From Bugula neritina (lineage: Eukaryota; Animalia; Bryozoa): a DNA stretch of 33,089 nucleotides. The number at the start of each line of letters is the position of its first letter. The stretch's first letter is position 1. Positions 242-16,391 of the stretch are shown here, piece after piece. The translations under genes were made by a program, and so were the position numbers. The stretch spans positions 175,896 to 208,984 of the forward strand of contig CAXIUT010000057.1 of the NCBI GenBank assembly GCA_964035545.1, read 5' to 3'. The notes beneath the pieces were generated by a model that saw nothing but the letters and a program-made list of their open reading frames with translations, searched no databases and was not told the origin of the DNA.

Positions 242-3597
<3,356 letters not shown>

Positions 3598-4057
3598 TCT
3601 ATTTTCAAAGTAATATAAATCATATCATCGATAATTTTTGATATATTTTTGTTATATTTTAGTAAACAAAATTAATATTGAAAGAGATTTTAAAAAATTC
3701 TCATATATCTTTGTGCAAAAAGTTGGTTCGATAGTTTATCTTTCGAATGCTTTTTTATTAAAGTATTTTGAAGAAAAAGAAAAAAAAAATATCAGACTAT
3801 GAATATAAATTGAGATAAATATCGTTGAGATCGATTAATTTTTTATCCATTAATATTCAATATTTATTTTAAACTCATCATAATCTTCAATAAATAAAAA
3901 TTAATTTTTTATTCACAATAAAAATACTTTTCAAGCAATCTCAAGAAGTTCATAGACATAATTGAAATTTTAATTTATTTTATTATCCATAAACCAGTAA
4001 TTTTTTAATATTAATTATTAGAATAAAAAGAGCTTAATAATTTAAAAAACTCCCGAG

Positions 4058-5157
4058 ATGTTAGATAAAAAACTTGTCTTATCATCAGCTATAATCATCA
4101 TAGCTATTGGATCTGTAGTGAAGATACAAAATCATCAAGAAGATAGCTGTTATTGCACGACTTCTGATCCACCTTTTTAATTTTCTACTTGTACTTCCGA
4201 GGATGATAGTTCTACTTGTATCACTGGACCTGGAACTTTCTGTTATTAAGTGTTGGATAAAATAGGATCTGATTGTTCAGTAATTTTTGATCCGTTTTAT
4301 CTAAACAATGGCATTATTGGGAATTGTAAACAATATATTTCAGAAGAAAATGATGCGGAAGTAATTTATTGCTGTGGTAAGAAATGTTCTTCTCCATAAC
4401 CTCTTCCAGCTGAAGATAACTGTTTCTGCCCTATGAAGATTCAACTAACAGTGTTGATGTTTGGACTTGCTAAGATGTCAATGGAATGCCAAAATACTGC
4501 AAAAATGGTCCTGGAAGTCAGTGCAGAACTACTCTAGAAGCTAGTACTGACTCTCGTGAAGATGTTTGTTCTAACTTGGGAAGTAGTGACAGCTGTTATA
4601 GCTAGAATGGTGTTCTTTGTTGTCCTAAAGACTGTTCCTAATCTCCTCCACCACCTCTTCCAACTCCAGATGAAGACTAGAACTGTTTCTGTTCCTTTGA
4701 GAGTGGATAGAATGAGTTGGACATCTGGACTTGTGAGTCTGATGATGGTAGTGAACCAATGAACTGTGTCAAAGACTCAGACTCAGACTGTTGGAGTGAC
4801 TTGCCTTCCTTCTTGGGAATGTCTTATGAAGCTACTTGTGAAAATATGGCCATTGATTCAAGTTGTAGAAACCTGGATGGAAGTGTTTTGTGTTGTCCTA
4901 AGCCTTGTTCTGAGACTCCACCTCCTCCAATGCAAGATTGTGAGTAAAAGTTGAGTGAGAAAAGAGACTGTGCTAATAAACCCAATCCTTCTAACTGTCT
5001 TTCAAGAGTGGCTATCAGATGTGCTGTATTAGATGCAAGGAGGACTTGTCGAGAGGAAAGGAATGTGAAAAGGAATTGCAAAGGAAGATCAAACAAATCA
5101 GCAAGAAGGCGTTGCAGAAGGAATGTTCGAGAGTTTTGCAAGAACAAGTTCAACTGA
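4058..5157 (+). CDS. Secreted Cys-rich modular protein, family copy 1; carries a 1-nt deletion at ~4432 (assembly error or pseudogene)
   Basis: Signal peptide MLDKKLVLSSAIIIIAIG, three 10-Cys domains and a basic tail. Reads tgccctatgaa where the other four copies read tgcccttatgaa. Span is 1100 nt, not a multiple of 3. Confidence 0.85.
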
Positions 5158-5338
5158 TTCTGATCAATCAATCCAATCAATATCGACATTCTAACTCAAA
5201 CCATCTCAATCTTTTTTATAAAATTAATATAATTTGATTTTGGTTAAAAACCATCTAGTTTTTAGATAATTCAAAAAAAGGTTTATCTTCAATCACAGAT
5301 ATATTACATTATTTACATATTAGTTTTTTTAGTGAAGA

Positions 5339-6457
5339 ATGAAAGCAGTAAAACTCCTTTTGGTTACTTTACTCTTGACCGTGGTGGCTGGCTAGATTCT
5401 TAAATCCAACTACCATCATCAGCCTGAACCTGACTGCTTCTGTCATTAGCTATTTCCCGCTTTGGATTTGTTAACTTGCTAGTCAGTTGATGCTGCTGGT
5501 GATGGAGTAAACTGTCAAAATGGAGCTGGCAGTTTGTGTCATGACTCAGTTCAATCACTTATAGATTCTGAATCTTTTACTTTTGATTTTTATTGTCAAA
5601 CATCTGGGAGGAAAATAAACTAATTAGGTTTACCAAAATGTACATTATTCATAATTGGATAGCCATAATATTGTTGCTTTGAACATTGTTCTACACCACC
5701 TCTTGCAGCTGAAGATAACTGTTTCTGCCCTTATGAAGACTCAGCTAACAGTTTTGATGTTTGGACTTGCTAAGATGTCAATGGAATGCCAAAATACTGC
5801 AAAAATGGTCCTGGAACTCAATGCAGAACTACTCTAGAAGCTAGCACTGACTCTCGTGAAGATGTTTGTTCTAACTTGGGAAGTAGTGACAGTTGCTATA
5901 GCTAGAGTGGTGTTCTTTGTTGTCCTAAAGACTGTTCCTAATCTCCTCCGCCACCTCTTCCAACTCCAGATGAAGACTAGAACTGTTTCTGTTCCTTTGA
6001 GAGTGGATAGAATGAGTTGGACATCTGGACTTGTGAGTCTGATGATGGTAGTGAACCAATGAACTGTGTCAAAGACTCAGACTCAGACTGTTGGAGTGAC
6101 TTGCCTTCCTTCTTGGGAATGTCTTATGAAGCTACTTGTGAAAATATGGCAATGGACTCAAGTTGTAGAAACCTGGATAGTAGTGTCTTATGTTGTCCAA
6201 AGCCTTGTTCTGAGACTCCACCTCCTCCAATGCAAGATTGTGAGTAAAAGTTGAACGAGAAAAGAGACTGTGCTAATAAACCCAATCCTTCTAACTGTCT
6301 TTCAAGAGTGGCTATCAGATGTGCTGTATTAGATGCAAGAAGAGCTTGTAGAGAGGAAAGGAATGTGAAAAAAAATTGCAAAGGAAGATCAAACAAATCA
6401 GCAAGAAGGCGTTGCAGAAGGAATGTTCGAGAGTTTTGCAAGAACAAGTTCAACTGA
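5339..6457 (+). CDS. Secreted Cys-rich modular protein, family copy 2 (372 aa, intact)
   Basis: MKAVKLLLVTLLLTVVAG signal peptide; open frame (TAR=Glu) to TGA; ends ...REFCKNKFN. Confidence 0.92.
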
Positions 6458-6849
6458 TTCTGATCAATCAATCAATCAATCAATCAATATAGACATTTTA
6501 ATTTTAATACTTATTGATTATCTAACAGTTTGTATACCTAAATTCGATTCATCATTTATTTAAGATAAAAACAATTCAAAGAAATATACAAAAAGATCAA
6601 ATAAAAATACTTTGAATAGAAGAGATTATCAAGATAAGTAAAAATAAAAAAAACTATAGTTTAGATTAATATCTTCAAGTTATTTTAAGATCTTCAAAAA
6701 CAGTAGGAACTTGCTTGAATCAATTCTTTATTTAAAATATTTAAAAGCTTTCTCTTTCACTTTATCTTTATTATTTTTACCTTTTTCAATTAACTTGTTT
6801 CTTAATTTTAAAGAAAACAATAGATAGAAGAGTATTCAATCAGAATGTT

Positions 6850-7637
6850 TTCTTTAAATATACTGAAAATGAAGTGACAATTTGTAGTCTTTGTTCTGAG
6901 ATGAAGAATATTCTACTCTTTCCTTATTCTTCAGCTTTTCGCTAAACACTGAATAATATCTTTTGTACTATATTAATGAATACAAGATAAAGTATCAATG
7001 ATATTTGCCCTTTTCTTCATTAAAGTTCTTGAAATAATTATATTGATATGAGATTTATAAATCATACTTCCCAAAATATCTCTTAACTCTAAGTTTTCTT
7101 TATTGAAATATTTTGTAAATATTTTTCAACAATTATTTTAAAACAACATTAAAACAATATCATTAGTATTAACTAAGATTAAGATCATTAAAAAAATCAA
7201 TTTATTAGTTTTATAAATTTTCAGATAAATTTTCTTCATCTTGAACTAATATTAAAGCTATCAATTATCCTCTTATCATTAGTTGTATTATTAAAAATAG
7301 AACTTATCAATTGAAATATTTGCACCTTGTAGAAGAACTCTTACCGCAATAAAAACTTGATTTTGTGGAAAGTCCAAAGCTTCTTTCTTCCTTCCTGCAT
7401 ATCCTCAAAGATCGACAATGTTCTTGTTGATGACTTTTACTCCATCATGATCTCCACATAAAAAATAAAAAAGATAAATTAACCTAAAAAACACTTTTTA
7501 AAGCTTTGGAGATAACCCTAAGAAATTCTAATAAGATTTTTGTTAAGAATATTTCTATCAAAATTTTACCTGTAAGTTTTTGTGATATTAATTGATAAAA
7601 CTCAAAATAGTCCAATAATTTTAATATAAGTTTAGAG
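6850..7637. repeat. Diverged upstream spacer of the duplication unit, homologous to ~9050-9831 and (inverted) ~15265-15850
   Basis: Shared blocks such as tttattagttttata, attaaagct, tcattagtt and ccatcatgat occur in the same order upstream of copies 3, 4 and 5. Confidence 0.75.
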
Positions 7638-8750
7638 ATGCTAAGCATAAAACTTACTTTGTTCATGATCCTTATAGCTATGGCTATGGCTTAGGTGGTA
7701 AAAGTAAACTACCATTAGCCAGTAGATGGCTGTTCTTGTCCTAACTAGTAACCCTCCTTTGATTATCAACTTTGTCAAGGATTTGATGAAGTAGGAAACG
7801 GGATAGATTGTGAGCCAAGTGGACCTAATACTCACTGTACTCAGTATATTTACAATACCGGTCTCTGTTTCAGATTTTTTCTTGATGAATAATGTCATAG
7901 AGCAGAAACAATAGTAAATGAACAGGGATAAACTATATTCTTGGGGTACTGTTGTACTGAAGCATGTGTGAGCCCTCCTCCACCACCTCTACCAGCTGAA
8001 GATAACTGTTTCTGCCCTTATGAAGATTCAGCTAACAGTGTTGATGTTTGGACTTGCTAAGATGTCAATGGAGTGCCAAAATACTGCAAAAATGGTCCTG
8101 GAAGTCAGTGCAGAACTACTCTAGAAGCTAGCACTGACTCTCGCGAAGATGTTTGTTTTAATTTGGGAAGGATTGATAGCTGCTATAGCTAGAGTGGTGT
8201 TCTTTGTTGTCCTAAAGACTGTTCCTAATCTCCTCCTCCACCTCTTCCAACTCCAGATGAAGACTAGAACTGTTTCTGTTCCTTTGAGAGTGGATAGAAT
8301 GAGTTGGACATCTGGACTTGTGAGTCTGATGATGGTAGTGAACCAATGAACTGTGTCAAAGATTCAGACTCAGATTGTTGGAGTGACTTGCCTTCCTTCT
8401 TGGGAATGTCTTATGAAGCTACTTGTGAAAATATGGCTATGGATTCTAACTGCAAAAGTCTTAACCTGGATGGAAGTGTTTTATGTTGTCCTAAGCCTTG
8501 TTCTGAGACTCCACCTCCTCCAATGCAAGATTGTGAGTAAAAGTTGAGTGAGAAAAGAGACTGTGCTAACAAACCCAATCCTTCTGACTGTCTTTCAAGA
8601 GTGGCTATCAGATGTGCTGTATTAGATGCAAGAAGAGCTTGTCGAGAGGAAAGGAAGGAGAAAAGGAATTGCAAAGGAAGATCAAGCAGACAAGCAAGAA
8701 GACGTTGCAGAAGGAACGTCAGAGAATTTTGTAAGAACAAGTTCAACTGA
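7638..8750 (+). CDS. Secreted Cys-rich modular protein, family copy 3 (370 aa, intact)
   Basis: MLSIKLTLFMILIAMAMA signal peptide; open frame to TGA; same domain layout. Confidence 0.92.
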
Positions 8751-9831
8751 TCCTGATCAATAAATCTAATCCATATTGAAATTTCTATATTAACTATTTA
8801 TCCTTAATATAATAAGCTTGTTTCCTCTAAGTCAGATAAGTTATAAGAGTAGATGTCTGAAACTTAAAGAAAGAAAAACTCAAAAAAATACCAAGATAAA
8901 TCAGTTAAAAATCCTGTCAAGATTAAGAGATTTTCAAAATAGTGAAAAGAAGAAGGCTAAAACTCATCAATTAAATGTCTTCAATCTTTAAAAACTATAT
9001 TTATCTCAGAATTTTATGATTTTTTTTCTCAATTGTAAAAAAAGAATTTGATTAGAAGTGTTTAATCACAATTTTTTCTTGAAATATCTTGAAAAATATT
9101 CTATAGTTTTCAGTCTTTGTTCCGAAATGATGTATATTCTGCCATTTTCATTTTCTTCAGCTTATAGCTAACATTGATCTCTTTTTATCTTATTATTGAT
9201 ACAATTTTAAGTTAAAATAATATTTAATATTTGATTAATATAAATCATTAGGTTTATCTTTCAATGCTTTAATAGTATTTACTCGGGATACCTCTTAACT
9301 GTAAGTTTCTTGTTTCGAAAATATTTAAAATAAATTCTGAATAATTTAAATATAAACTACATAAAAACACTTTTATCTTCATAAATTAAGATGAATAGCA
9401 TCACAAAGGTCAATTTATTAGTTTTATAAAATTTTCGATAAAAATTTCTTTTTGAACTAAAATTAAAGCTGTTATTTATTTACCCTTTTCTCATTAGTTG
9501 CATTATTCAAAGATGAAAAGTACGAACAGTAATATTTCTTTTTGATATGAAATCCTTATCAAAACGATAACCTAATTTTTAGATACTCCTAAGCTTCTTT
9601 ATCCTTTCATGCCTCGTCTCAACTCCTAATAGTGTTCTCATAGATGGTCAGAAAACCATCATGATGTCCGCGGAAAAAAATAAAATATTCCGATTCATGA
9701 GAAGAATTCTAGAAGCCTTGATAAAGTTTAAGATCATCTGATTTATTCTTCCACTTTTACCATAAAGTTTGTTGCGATATAAATTGATAAACTAAAAAGA
9801 AGAATTCAATAATTTTATTTTAAGTTCAGAG

Positions 9832-10953
9832 ATGTCAAACATAAAGTTTGCTTTGTTCTTGGTCCTCATAGCTATAGCTGCAGGCTAGATAGTGAAAATA
9901 AACTACCATCAGTTAGGAACAAACTGTTGGTGTCCTGATTTGGCTCCACGATTGACTTCGTGGACTTGCCCTCAAACCGCTCTAGTAGGTGTGATTAATC
10001 GACCAGCTGATACATCCCAATGTACCACTGGACCTGGTACAGCATGCTAAACGCTCTTTAACACTCTAAATGGACAGGGAGGAGCAGGTTTTGCTTGTCA
10101 AATTTTGGAATACGACTATTCAGAAAATGAATGTCGATAAAGTAGCTCTGGTTCAACCTAATATTGCTGTCCCTTCGCTTGTCCACCACCTCTTCCAGCT
10201 GAAGATAACTGTTTCTGCCCTTATGAAGATTCAACAGATAGTGTTGATATTTGGACTTGCTAAGATGTCAATGGAGTGCCAAAATACTGCAAAAATGGTC
10301 CTGGAAGTCAGTGCAGAACTACTCTAGAAGCTAGCACTGACTCTCGCGAAGATGTTTGTTTTAATTTGGGAAGGATTGATAGCTGCTATAGCTAGAGTGG
10401 TGTTCTTTGTTGTCCTAAAGACTGTTCCTAATCTCCTCCTCCACCTCTTCCAACTCCAGATGAAGACTAGAACTGTTTCTGTTCCTTTGAGAGTGGATAG
10501 AATGAGTTGGACATCTGGACTTGTGAGTCTGATGATGGTAGTGAACCAATAAACTGTGTCAAAGACTCTGACTCAGACTGTTGGAGTGACTTACCTTCCT
10601 TCTTGGGAATGTCTTATGAAGCTACTTGTGAAAATATGGCTATGGATTCTAACTGCAAAAGTCTTAACCAAGATGGAAGTGTTTTGTGTTGTCCTAAGCC
10701 TTGTTCTGAGACTCCACCTCCTCCAATGCAAGATTGTGAGTAAAAGCTGAGTAAGAAAAGAGATTGTGCTAACAGACCCAATCCTCAGTTCTGTCTTTCA
10801 AGAGTAGCGATCAGATGTGCGAGATTAGACGCAAGGAGAATTTGCAGAAAACAAAAGAGAGAGAAAAGGAATTGCAAAGGAAAGCCAAGTAGATATGCAA
10901 GAAGGCGCTGCAGATGGAATGTTCGACGATAATGCAGGAGAAAATTCAGATGA
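9832..10953 (+). CDS. Secreted Cys-rich modular protein, family copy 4 (373 aa, intact)
   Basis: MSNIKFALFLVLIAIAAG signal peptide; open frame to TGA; ends ...RRECRRKFR. Confidence 0.92.
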
Positions 10954-11593
10954 TCCAATCAATTTATCCAATACATATTAAGATTTTGATCACAATCATT
11001 TTCTAACAAACTTGTATTTCCTCAGTTCGATATTTTTTTTGAAGAATAAATCAATGGTTTTAAAGAATAAAAATAAATTTCTAAGCTTAAAGAACAAAAA
11101 TTCAAATAAAGGCCGAAAAAAACAAATCAAAAAAAATTAAACTGAGAAGAAGAAATGATCAAGAAGTACTAAAAGAATAAATCTAATATTCAAGTTGAAA
11201 TTATTGAAGCACTTATAATACCCATAACAATAGCAGTTATAAAATTGATTAAATCCTTTAAATCAGTTATTTATTTCAAGATAGTGAGTAATTTCTTTCT
11301 CAATTACTTTTATCTTTTTGGTTCTTTGAGTTCATATCTAGAATATAATATTAGAACTTAGAAATATATTTTGTCTTCATCAAATAAAATCAATCGCTTT
11401 TAAAAATATATATAAAGACTGATAAAACTTTTTGAATTAATGTTTGTCGAATAAGATAAATAGTAAAAGGACTATGATGAAATCCAATCAAGATAAAAAG
11501 CTGATTTTTTTCTTAAATTTGAAATAAATATCTATCTTTATAATCATCTATTTCAATACCAATTAATATTCATTGATTTATCCATAATTAAAT

Positions 11594-11906
11594 ATGGAGA
11601 AGGACTATCACAAATCAAAGAAATATACCAAGTACTTCACCCTTACTAAGCGATGAACTAACCAACCTTGATATTCCATATAAATTTCGGGACTTTTGCC
11701 AATAAGACTATGCAGATTACATTTCTTGCGTGAGGACTCATCCAAGAGTATTTGAAAATTTATTTTTCTATTCGATTCCTTTCAGTGAAGGACTGTCGAG
11801 TTGTAAAGTGTTTAGACGGAAGTGGCAGAAATGCTAAGAATATCGAGAGAAGGAATTGTTCGAATAGATGAAGAAGATATACGATTTGCAAAGAGATTTA
11901 GTCTGA
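11594..11906 (+). CDS. NDUFB7: NADH:ubiquinone oxidoreductase subunit B18 (NDUFB7)-like, 97 aa; 19-nt intron at 11632-11650
   Basis: LDIPYKFRDFCQEDYADYISCVR...SSCKVFRRKWQKCEEYRE is a twin CX9C with the RDxC signature. Intron gtacttcacccttactaag joins the ATG exon in frame. Confidence 0.75.
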
Positions 11907-12190
11907 TAGAAGTTCCTTGATATTGATTAGTTTGATAAACTGATTTAAAACTTGTTTACTAAAATATATATTGAGTCAATACTCATTTTTTAAGTTTTAA
12001 AATGTTGACTACTATTCAGATAGAATCGCTATTTATATACTAAAGTATCATCCTAAAGCTAAAATTACGATTGAATAAATATTCCATATAATTAATTTTA
12101 TAAAATTGATTAAACTACCTATATATGTACATATTTATTATTCTTTTAGTTATATTTTGATAATTATACAATCAAGTATAAAGTACAAAA

Positions 12191-13827
12191 ATGCAGGAAA
12201 ACCTCTAAGGAGTCAGAATTAAATCCTATAACTTTCTAAGAGTACTAGGCAAAGGACAATTCGCAACCGTCTATGAAGCCTACAACGAACAAAACAACAC
12301 CACTGTGGCAGTCAAAGCTATATCCATGGCTCAGTTCAAACAACCCATCATCAAAGAACTAACACAATCAGAGGTCAAAATAATGAAGCTACTCAGAGAC
12401 AACCCTAACATCATCAAATTTATCGATAACTTCAAAACTGATAATTCCGTCCTCATAGTTATGGAATATTGCGAACAAGGAACTCTTGAATAGTACACGA
12501 AAAAACATGGAAGACTAACATAGGACAAAGCTACACATTTTCTCAAACAAATTATCAACGGATTCAAAGGGCTGCACTAGAAAAATGTTATCCATCGAGA
12601 CTTTAAATCAGCAAATGTACTTCTGAAAGGAGGAGTAGCCAAGATAGCTGACCTAGGATTTGCTAAAATGCTATCAAATAGTCTATAAATGGCACATACA
12701 CAACTAGGAACATCACTAACTATGGCTCCTTAAGTTCATGAAGGGAGTCCATATGGTCTAAAGGCAGATATATGGTCGCTAGGAGTGGTATACTACCAGT
12801 TGATCTACAATAGATATCCTTATTTGGGAAGAGATGATAACTAAATTTATAAAATGATGAAGTACCCTCCTAATTTTTCTGGAATTAATATCAGTGCAAA
12901 GTCTAAAGATTTTATTTCTCGATGTTTGACTTTTAACCCAGACAAAAGAATCTCATGGGCTGAGGTTTATAGACACAGATTAATTACAGAAGAAGAAAAA
13001 GCTAAATATGGAGTGATGACAGGTGTGGACATGTCAAAAAATATGTCTTTTTACGACAAATATAAAGAAAAAGATATTTCTAAAGAAAAATTATTTAATA
13101 TCAGTGAAACAGAACTCGAACTCCAGCAATAACAACAGTTAAAGGAAATATAACTCTAGAAATTCAAGTTTTTCAACTAAAAGAAAAAGAAGAATACAGC
13201 TTTATTAGAAAAATACAAGCTAATTTATCTTAACTTCAGAAACAATCATGTATTTCCTTTCAAGTATATTTTGCCTCACGTAAATACCATCCTCTCTATC
13301 AAGGCGAACCATCCTTTATATTTGTACATTATATGTAAAAAATCATACCATGACATTCTTGTCTTTTATGATCTTCTAAAGGAAAAGCCAATTTTTTGAA
13401 TCTTGAGCCAGGTTTTTAAGAATTTTCAGAGAGTCAAGTCTATAAAGAACTAAAACAGATGGTTGAATAAGATGTCTGTGTAGTTAAGTTTCAAACTATT
13501 TAGTATTTAAAATCTGTTAAGGAAGTTGATGGAGAGTCAAAAAAAGAACTAGAGTTAGATACTATAAATAACAAGCAATGGGATAAATATGTCAAATCGA
13601 TGATATAGAACTATGAATACATTTTAATGTAAAACCTCGATGTGCTGAAAGATGAATTTCAAGAGAAATTGATTCTGGTGATTGAAGCTTTGAACTATCT
13701 GAAGAATAATTAAGAAGACAAAAAGTTCGAGGTATTCGACAAAAGATTATCAGAACTAAACTTCAAGCATGCAATCGAAATAATAAATGCAAAACTAGCT
13801 TATGTTTGGAATAAATACCAGCAGTGA
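12191..13827 (+). CDS. Ser/Thr protein kinase (ULK/ATG1-like ciliate family); apparent -1 frameshift near 13355-13397 in the C-terminal extension
   Basis: GKGQFATVY, VAVK, HRDFKSANVLL, DLG, MAP(TAA=E), ADIWSLG. The kinase frame hits TGA at 13397, but a protein-like frame continues to TGA at 13825-13827. Confidence 0.88.
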
Positions 13828-14136
13828 TTGTGATTAAGTAACTTTTGATAAAAATATTATTAACTATATTTTATGATTAATTTAAATTTATGATTTGTTC
13901 GAGGATTTACTCTATATCATTCGGGTGAGTATTTCATTTCTTTGAACTAAAATGGATATCTAGGCATAAAGTCATGATTACTGTTTGAATAGCTCTAATA
14001 GATAATAAATTTTTAAAATCATTCAAAAAAACACAAAAAAGTAACAATCTAAAAGTATAGATCAAATTATTACTGAGATAATTTAAATATTGATTCTTGT
14101 AATAATTTAAAAATATATTTGTTTTATTGATCAAGA

Positions 14137-15264
14137 TCATCTGAATTTTCTCCTGCATTATCTTCGAATATTCCATCTACATCGCCTTCTTGCAAATCTG
14201 GTTGATTTTCCTTTGCAATTCCTTTTCTCTCTCTTCTGTATTCTGCAAATTCTCCTTGCATCTAATACTGCACATCTGATGGCTACTCTTGAAAGACATT
14301 TTTGAGGATTAGGTTTGTTAGCACAGTCTCTTTTCTCACTAAGCTTTTACTCACAATCTTGCATTGGAGGAGGTGGAGTCTCAGAACAAGGTTTTGGACA
14401 ACACAAAACACTTCCATCTTGGTTAAGGCTTTTGCAGTTAGAATCCATTGCCATATTTTCACAAGTAGCTTCATAAGACATTCCCAAGAAGGAAGGCAAG
14501 TCACTCCAACAGTCTGAGTTAGAGTCTTTGACACAGTTCATTGGTTCACTACCATCATCAGACTCACAAGTCCAGATATCTAACTCATTCTATCCACTCT
14601 CAAAGGAACAGAAACAGTTCTAGTCTTCATCTGGAGTTGGAAGAGGTGGAGGAGGAGATTAGGAACAGTCTTTAGGACAACAAAGAACACCACCTTAGCT
14701 ATAGCAGCTGTCACTACTTCCCAAGTTAGAACAAACATCATCACGAGAGTCAGTGCTAGCTTCTAGAGTAGTTCTGCATTGACTTCCAGGACCATTTTTG
14801 CAGTATTTTGGCACTCCATTGACATCTTAGCAAGTCCAAACATCAACACTATATGTTGAATCTTCATAAGGGCAGAAACAGTTATCCTAAGCTGGAAGAG
14901 GTGGCGGTGATGGTGGGCAATCGAAGGGACAGCAGAAGTCGCCAAATTAATTATTACCATTAGTAACAAGCTGACATTTATTTTAATTATATTGTCAATT
15001 AATAACAGAACAAACATCGAATCTTCCATCGAGCAAAATAAAGGTTTCATAGCAATATGTACCAACTCCAAAAGTACATTGAGATGCATCTGGTGGACTA
15101 TTACCCTCCCTGAGAACTGAAACAGAGCAAGTCCCCCAATTCAATTGAGGAGATAGTTCAGGGCACAAACAGTTTGTTCCTACTTTATGGTAGTTTATTT
15201 TCACTATTTAACCTACAGCCATAGCTATGAGGACCAAGAACAATGCAAGTTTTACGTTTGACAT
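14137..15264 (-). CDS. Secreted Cys-rich modular protein, family copy 5 (inverted); in-frame TGA at 14995-14997 (possible pseudogene)
   Basis: MSNVKLALFLVLIAMAVG signal peptide; 1128 nt with no frameshift; all Cys retained; one internal TGA in the variable domain. Confidence 0.85.
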
Positions 15265-16391
15265 CTCTAAACTTAAAATAAAATTATTGAATTGTTTTGA
15301 GTCAGATCAATTAATATCACAAAAACGTACTGGTAAAATAAAAAGTAAACTCAGATAATATCAAAACAGTATCAGAGCTTCTGTAATCCTTCAAGAGAGC
15401 GAAATAAAGTGTTTTTTAACTCAATAAATCATTTTTATTTTTTTCCGCGGAGATCATGATGGATTTCAGATCATCAATGAGGACATTGTTGTAGCTGGGG
15501 ATAAACAGGAACGGACAAAGAAGCTGTAGAGTCTCTAAAGATCAATTTTTCATGTTTGTAAGGATCTTCTATAAGAGGCAAATATTACTACAGTTCGTAT
15601 GTTGCACTTTTAATAATGTAACTAATGATAAGAGGATAATCAACAGCTTTAATTTTGATTCAAGAACAAAATATTATCAAAAAAATTATAAAACTAATAA
15701 ATCGACCTTCATGATGCTATTTATATCAATTCGGTGACTAAATTGTTTTATGTTGTTCAGATTAAAATTATGATATTAATTATTACAATAATATTTTTCA
15801 AAAAAACTTAGATTTAAGAGAAATATTATTCTTAAGTAAGAATTTTAACCATAGTAACCATCATAGCTTAAATAATTTCAAGGAAATAAACATTGGATAT
15901 TGAAATAGCTTTATACTTCACTCATTAATTAGATAAAAAAATATCATTCAATAGCTTAACTATAAATCAGGCTAAATATTAAAGATAAAAGGAATAATAG
16001 TCAACCGAGTTGATAAACCTTGGAAGAGACCTGAAAAAGAGTTAGTTCTGATAGTTTTAATAATATTGAAGTTTCTATCTGTATGTCCAAGTGCTCCATT
16101 GATTTGATACAATTTTTTTTTGATAAGAATAATAGTACTTTGTAGTTGTAAAAGGCTCAAGCAGTATCGAAAATAAACTTAGAAATTTAACTAAAATACT
16201 TGTTCTTTCCCACTCAGAATAGTTCTTTTAAGCTTCAATATTTGTTTTCATATTTTTTATTGAAGATATGACGAATAGATTATGATTTTAAGACTAATTT
16301 AGATAAATATCATGAAAATATAAAAAGAATAAACAAGTTAATAGTATCATGTCGAATCATCTATCATATTAAATTTGAAAATAATACAATA

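Follow-up and report, generated by a model that had tools for sequence, protein, structure and literature searches.

The window analysed here is a 33 kb scaffold piece (33,089 nt; positions 175896-208984 of contig CAXIUT010000057.1 in assembly GCA_964035545.1, deposited under Bugula neritina), and all positions are given in window coordinates. It carries five paralogous genes, g1 to g5, that lie within 4-15 kb of a macronuclear telomere of C4A2 repeats (1-105, unstranded) at the left end of the chromosome. Each encodes a variable ten-cysteine module (V), two constant ten-cysteine modules (C1 and C2) and a cysteine-rich tail. Gene g1 occupies 4058-5157 on the forward strand (V 4148-4387, C1 4421-4635, C2 4684-4908, tail 4939-5154) and is followed on the same strand by g2 at 5339-6457 (V 5435-5689, C1 5720-5935, C2 5984-6208, tail 6239-6454), g3 at 7638-8750 (V 7731-7967, C1 8007-8222, C2 8271-8501, tail 8532-8747) and g4 at 9832-10953 (V 9925-10182, C1 10210-10425, C2 10474-10704, tail 10735-10950). 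Gene g5 is inverted and runs from 15264 to 14137 on the reverse strand (V 14917-15171, C1 14665-14880, C2 14386-14616, tail 14140-14355). We find that these genes form a new protein family with an evolutionary design of a known kind, in which one module has diverged deeply between copies and the remainder is homogenised by gene conversion.

Immediately upstream of the window, the scaffold contains the G4T2 end of the previous chromosome and then 200 N, after which the window opens with its C4A2 tract. This order shows that a macronuclear chromosome truly ends at the left edge of the window, 4 kb before the start of the cluster. The genes are thus subtelomeric, as had been proposed in an initial annotation of this DNA made from the sequence alone.

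The window is read with the peritrich nuclear code (NCBI table 30), in which TAA and TAG encode glutamate and TGA is the sole stop. The clearest evidence comes from the first gene on the chromosome, a P-type cation ATPase of the plasma-membrane Ca-ATPase type (242-3238, forward strand) that starts 240 nt from the telomere. Pieces of this frame match the Pfam families Hydrolase and Cation_ATPase_C, and the motifs DKTGT, TGDN and GDGTND are present. It contains 57 in-frame TAA/TAG codons, and TAA occupies the invariant glutamate of both PEGLP (1301-1315) and ACETMG (1391-1408). Within the five-gene family, one codon position has GAA in four genes and TAG in the remaining one. Each family gene has 9-12 in-frame TAA/TAG codons, with at least one in every module, and all five end in TGA. 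The choice of table 30 in the initial annotation is borne out by these observations.

Under this code, the five translations are 366-375 residues long (~40 kDa) and share one common layout: an N-terminal hydrophobic leader of 18-19 residues that forms the signal peptide, a conserved xVKxNYH stretch, V, a PPLP linker (linker 1), C1, a SESPPPPLPTPDEDEN linker, C2, a SETPPPPMQD linker, and a polycationic tail of 72 residues with 8 cysteines. Direct reading of the translations reveals no second hydrophobic stretch. Each protein contains 38 cysteines in addition to its proline linkers, and charge is strongly partitioned along the chain, with V, C1, C2 and the linkers together carrying about -36 to -40 and the tail +14 to +23. 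In the tail of g2 (6239-6454), and likewise in those of g1 and g3, two Cx9C pairs lie within a regular C-x7-11-C series; these pairs are reminiscent of disulfide-stapled helical hairpins, and neither Pfam nor the ESM Atlas gave a match.

All 15 modules contain exactly 10 cysteines, with a CxC motif separated from the next cysteine by 11 residues in V or 13 residues in C1 and C2, and with a CC-x3-C motif at the end. CxC and CC-x3-C are the only short cysteine spacings in the modules, and the residue that follows the latter is S, P or V, never N. A C2 query retrieves C1 in a genome search at E ~1e-6, and a V profile aligns with a C profile over all ten cysteines with an hhalign probability of 94% (E = 9e-8). 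When scored with a hidden Markov model (HMM) of the C modules, four of the five V modules also exceed the 99th percentile of their composition-matched shuffles. Together, these comparisons indicate that V, C1 and C2 are homologous. These results uphold both the proposed layout, in which the first module varies and the rest of the secreted protein is a constant scaffold, and the proposed common ten-cysteine frame.

In V itself, the ten cysteines are kept in all five copies, while the other positions average only 22% identity and the loops differ in length, in agreement with the initial view that little else is retained. This shared disulfide frame is predicted to yield one fold that presents five different surfaces.

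All five genes lie where they had first been placed; three of them are intact, namely g2 (372 residues), g3 (370 residues) and g4 (373 residues), and the other two appear disabled in the assembly. In g1, which spans 1100 nt, one T is missing from CCCTTATG at 4429-4435, just past the junction between V and the constant part, and this 1-nt deletion breaks the frame. In g5, an in-frame TGA (14995-14997, minus strand) lies inside V. The read contigs discussed below end at 4427/4428, short of the g1 deletion, and g5 lies outside the 6-kb read comparison. Substitutions found only in g1 or only in g5 show no excess of replacements within the constant parts. Consequently, these lesions are recent, or are errors, or are masked by ongoing conversion.

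Self-BLAST delimits homogenised blocks of 795-810 bp that are pairwise 88.7-95.9% identical. They are found at 4387-5193 in g1 (forward strand; 88.9-95.9% against the other four blocks), 5686-6480 in g2 (forward strand; boundary resolved base by base), 7975-8787 in g3 (forward strand), 10178-10986 in g4 (forward strand) and 14104-14904 in g5 (reverse strand). Each block spans linker 1, C1, C2, the tail and ~30 nt past the stop. A sliding comparison reveals that nucleotide identity is ~40-55% in V and reaches ~90-100% over only a few bases of linker 1, at CCACCTCTTCCAGCTGAAGATAAC, and the abrupt variable-to-constant switch described earlier is therefore real. The 3′ edge of the block fades gradually. 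A (CAAT)n / ATCA microsatellite directly follows the TGA of g1 (5158-5190) and of g2 (6458-6490), with two more units in g2, and falls in this fading edge.

We estimated synonymous (dS) and nonsynonymous (dN) divergence and their ratio (omega) for each domain with the Nei-Gojobori method under code 30. C1 has a dS of 0.05-0.21 and an omega of 0.2-0.4, C2 a dS of 0.14-0.38 and an omega of 0.03-0.13, and the tail a dS of up to 0.7 and an omega of ~0.15-0.4. The constant part is thus under purifying selection (omega 0.03-0.4). In V, dS ranges from 0.8 to saturated, dN is 0.5-1.0 and omega is 0.4-0.7. The initial annotation held C1 and C2 to be almost identical even at silent sites; this was overstated, given the dS values above and the presence of two tail subtypes (g1-g3 versus g4-g5). 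Despite this correction, the difference in coalescence depth between V and the rest of the gene, with dS at 0.8 to saturated versus 0.05-0.38 in C1 and C2, is real.

The constant block contains 67 parsimony-informative sites, which variously support the partitions 123|45, 12|345, 125|34, 145|23 and 134|25, and sites that share a partition cluster along the sequence. The 34 bp at 5857-5890, for example, contain six 125|34 sites, inside stretches that support 12|345 and 123|45. With the sites limited to the 53 that have two states and no gaps, a PHI-like permutation test gave p = 0.0001. Such clustered, incompatible site patterns indicate gene conversion among the constant blocks, and the inverted copy g5 participates in the exchange. 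The constant block has therefore been homogenised by repeated gene conversion between copies, with the hallmarks of concerted evolution: paralogues more alike than their flanks, a mosaic of clustered sites, and low dS within the tract.

Comparison of the 5′ flanks places V in a wider context. The leader and the 700 nt that precede the gene can still be aligned among g3, g4 and g5, with 65-88% identity in blocks; the upstream region and leader of g3 (6795-7715, forward strand) match those of g4 (9022-9972) and g5 (15124-15820, minus strand) at 71-78% in blocks. Among these three genes, dS is 0.29-0.46 in the leader, 0.8 to >2 in V and 0.08-0.24 in the constant block, and dN at the non-cysteine positions of V is 0.64-1.5. 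In these copies, the deeply divergent V forms an island, flanked on one side by a leader and promoter that are more similar and on the other by the constant block. This arrangement favours selection that keeps V different, although it does not prove it. Separately, the upstream regions of g3-g5 (6795-7640, 9022-9832 and 15264-15820, the last on the minus strand) contain blocks of ~80-86% identity at ~-450 to -350, -200 and -50 from the ATG. These blocks are candidate promoter elements of a subfamily, and the upstream regions of g1 and g2 lack them.

Searches for relatives returned very little. In the 216-Mb assembly, queries with C2, a piece of the g5 V module, the tail and a C2 profile retrieved only these five genes. 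Eight stop-free pieces of the proteins had no Pfam match at E <= 10, a sequence search of the PDB gave nothing above noise, and an ESM Atlas feature search with C2 and the tail gave scores of at most 0.78. In particular, no Pfam profile or solved-structure sequence of the curated cysteine-rich domains (VWC, TIL, CBM14, EGF, granulin and others) was matched. Word-indexed searches of 5.8 billion proteins yielded only one entry, P0001, and an exhaustive HMMER search of 1.84 billion representatives likewise found P0001, a 70-residue fragment, as the single relative. A further protein match, P0002, was rejected as a repetitive, spurious sequence. The statement that the domain was not recognisable has thus held up against Pfam, the PDB, HMMER and the ESM Atlas. 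Scans of JGI metagenomes with peptide patterns and with a degenerate DNA probe for NCVKDSxSxCWSD found no member, and a literature search found no description of such a family.

P0001 derives from a 642-bp ENA metagenome contig (L013). Under code 30, this contig encodes the end of C1, a SESPPPPLPTP linker as in the family, a C2 with 59% identity, and a cysteine-rich tail (429-641) that is acidic and has a cysteine spacing unlike that of the polycationic tail. Tail charge is therefore not conserved in the family. Among the read data, a sequencing run labelled as another organism (X4) also contains a constant block, which is ~90% identical. A contig from this run aligns from 5695 on, and upstream of that point it carries an unrelated V end (...EFCCGFPCS) that keeps CC-x3-C. 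The X4 contig and the environmental relative place the family in at least a few peritrichs, and the X4 contig indicates that the junction between V and the constant part is conserved. A peritrich-restricted orphan family of five paralogues is the best explanation of these results.

Logan contigs provide a check on the assembly itself. In two runs with the same organism label (X1 and X2), the covered V and intergenic DNA, e.g., 4000-4428, 6498-8021 and 8690-9834, shows 0 differences in at least one run. At g1 and g2, these contigs extend up to ~30 nt into the constant block and then break; such breaks at repeats are usual in de Bruijn graphs. The breaks could nevertheless be taken as a sign that one or two genes were multiplied in the assembly, or that the constant parts were equalised by collapse or cross-polishing, and the C1 sequence of g1 at 4566-4615 is reproduced by none among the contigs listed. 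We consider an artefact of this kind highly improbable. Between copies, 4-11% of constant-block positions differ, and these differences form a structured mosaic. In at least one run, the contigs agree with the assembly over the V and intergenic DNA that they cover, and at g1 and g2 they connect V to the first bases of the block. In X2, the V of g1 shows 7 differences. Read-contig agreement and structured block differences together rule out simple collapse, which the initial annotation had named as a possible refutation of its reading. In X2, which is another sample, the only contigs that cover the promoter and V of g1 (4000-4427) differ from the assembly at 4 and 7 places, and ~3 kb of neighbouring unique DNA is without differences; this may reflect a second haplotype limited to the V of g1.

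The evolutionary pattern of a variable head on a constant scaffold is thus supported, and from it we infer a function in recognition. In the explanation that we favour, and to which we give about an even chance, the genes encode a lineage-specific secreted family in which a paralogue-specific N-terminal module, the likely binding head, sits on a scaffold kept uniform by conversion. V would be the specificity-determining, ligand-binding part, with a prey or bacterial surface, a mate, a substrate or a matrix as candidate ligands. The acidic C1-C2 body and the basic cysteine-rich tail may serve as a common scaffold or anchor, e.g., on an anionic surface or matrix. The diversity of V may in turn be shielded by selection against conversion tracts that would overwrite it. 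Several observations weigh against this explanation. Within V, omega is 0.4-0.8 and dS is saturated, so that positive selection is not formally proven. Promoter constraint, rather than homogenisation, could account for the similarity upstream of g3-g5. Two of the five copies carry disabling lesions in the assembly, and the only outside relative from the database searches carries an acidic tail, so that a cationic anchor is not conserved. In addition, none of the RNA runs examined holds the locus, and no binding partner, fold or homologue of known function was found; the AlphaFold models of stop-free pieces reached a pLDDT of 57 for C2 and 40 for V, too poor to argue for or against any fold, and a Foldseek search of the PDB with the C2-piece model returned no match at E <= 0.001.

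A stronger version of this reading, which we think quite unlikely, casts the V modules as recognition heads of a peritrich-specific system that distinguishes mates, self from non-self, prey, or epibionts or symbionts, and that rests on a ten-cysteine fold not seen before. It would entail an MHC-like regime, in which V diversity is under balancing or diversifying selection and its flanks are homogenised, and a charge-block scaffold by which the head is attached to the surface of the cell or stalk. At the other extreme, the pattern might be a neutral by-product: the genes would be old duplicates, conversion would cover only the 3′ 0.8 kb, and V would be the unhomogenised remainder in which only the disulfide frame is constrained. 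Conversion tracts would then stop where divergence blocks heteroduplex formation, and divergence-limited boundaries of this type are self-reinforcing. The saturated dS of V and its omega below 1 fit such an account, as does the gradual decay at the 3′ boundary of the block, which is expected of tract ends. It has more difficulty with the 5′ boundary, which coincides to within a few bases across all five copies and the contig from another taxon, and with the leader and promoter of g3-g5, which lie beyond V and are also much more alike than V. With similar flanks on both sides, a neutral origin would need two independent tracts that stop at the edges of V. Moreover, dN at the non-cysteine positions of V is two- to three-fold above the dS of the adjoining leader. 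Overall, we judge this neutral account unlikely.

A structural role has a somewhat better, though still minor, claim. The proteins may be adhesive or matrix components (of the stalk, scopula glue, cyst or pellicle coat), with charge-block units in which the V modules are subfunctionalised building blocks, and in which acidic modules and a polycationic cysteine-rich tail assemble head-to-tail or bind anionic polysaccharide. The strong charge blocks, the abundance of cysteines and the proline linkers would all suit this role, and chitin has been reported in the stalk that sessile peritrichs secrete (Jiang et al. 2025, as cited in PMC12411067). Against it, a Pfam search with the stop-free pieces revealed no domain of matrix or chitin-binding proteins, the tail of the outside relative is acidic, and five copies, two of them apparently broken, are few for a bulk material. 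In particular, a structural role leaves unexplained why the first module alone escapes homogenisation.

Comparison with known systems clarifies what the family is not. Immobilisation antigens are cysteine-rich, exported multigene families of ciliates with conserved and variable parts, often located near macronuclear telomeres and subject to gene conversion. Similarly, the five genes are telomere-near paralogues of cysteine-rich exported ciliate proteins that undergo gene conversion; in contrast, they combine three ten-cysteine modules with a polycationic tail in proteins of only ~40 kDa. An identity with the Paramecium/Tetrahymena immobilisation antigens was rejected, as it had been initially: none of the 15 modules contains CxxC, and the C-terminus is hydrophilic and basic over its 72 residues, without a hydrophobic GPI signal. 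The family also resembles trypanosome VSG and MHC-type regimes in its divergent N-terminal module and conserved C-terminal part, its telomere-proximal array, its gene conversion among copies, and the position of V between more similar flanks. This likeness is an analogy only, with no kinship in sequence or fold, and five copies contrast with hundreds.

At the level of the module, the Ly6/uPAR three-finger domain offers a similar cysteine arrangement. This domain has ten cysteines in the order 2 + 5 + 3 within 70-85 residues and a CC-x(n)-C end, in the pattern C-x2-C ... CC-x4-C-N. The family modules have the same cysteine order, size range and type of end but differ in their CxC and CC-x3-C spacings and in the absence of an asparagine after the last cysteine. 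The eight stop-free pieces, none of them a complete module, gave no Pfam match at E <= 10 to UPAR_LY6 or to toxin families. The C-terminal CC-x4/5-C-N motif of Ly6/uPAR is thus absent from them, and the low-confidence model of the C2 piece (pLDDT 57) contains helices. Euplotes pheromones are likewise secreted, cysteine-rich, ciliate-specific proteins with divergent sequences on one disulfide scaffold. However, they are single small helical domains (~40-100 residues) encoded by alleles of one locus, without three-module tandem paralogues or a constant part, and no sequence similarity to the family was detected.

Peritrichs are ecologically dominant sessile ciliates, common in biofilms and activated sludge and as epibionts, and to our knowledge almost none of their secreted proteins have been characterised. 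The locus offers a compact, testable protist case of a variable module on a constant scaffold, in which the boundary is defined to the base and homogenisation can be measured. If V is a binding head, one would have to ask what it is that a stalked, filter-feeding ciliate must tell apart; if the proteins are matrix or adhesive components, they would be candidates for the chemistry of the stalk or of substrate attachment. In either case, the ten-cysteine module is a candidate for a new small disulfide-rich fold.

The remainder of the window adds a few observations on the array and its chromosome. Between g4 and the inverted g5, a 402-residue open frame (12191-13399, forward strand) with a protein-kinase-like N-terminus (GxGxFATV ... 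VAVK) marks where the tandem array is interrupted. At its right end (33089), the window adjoins another 200-N gap and has no telomere on its side of that gap, and the chromosome is therefore at least 33 kb long and incomplete. The scaffold as a whole links macronuclear chromosomes or contigs end to end through gaps of exactly 200 N, at which telomere tracts face each other, and a further internal C4A2 tract lies at window coordinate ~44479.

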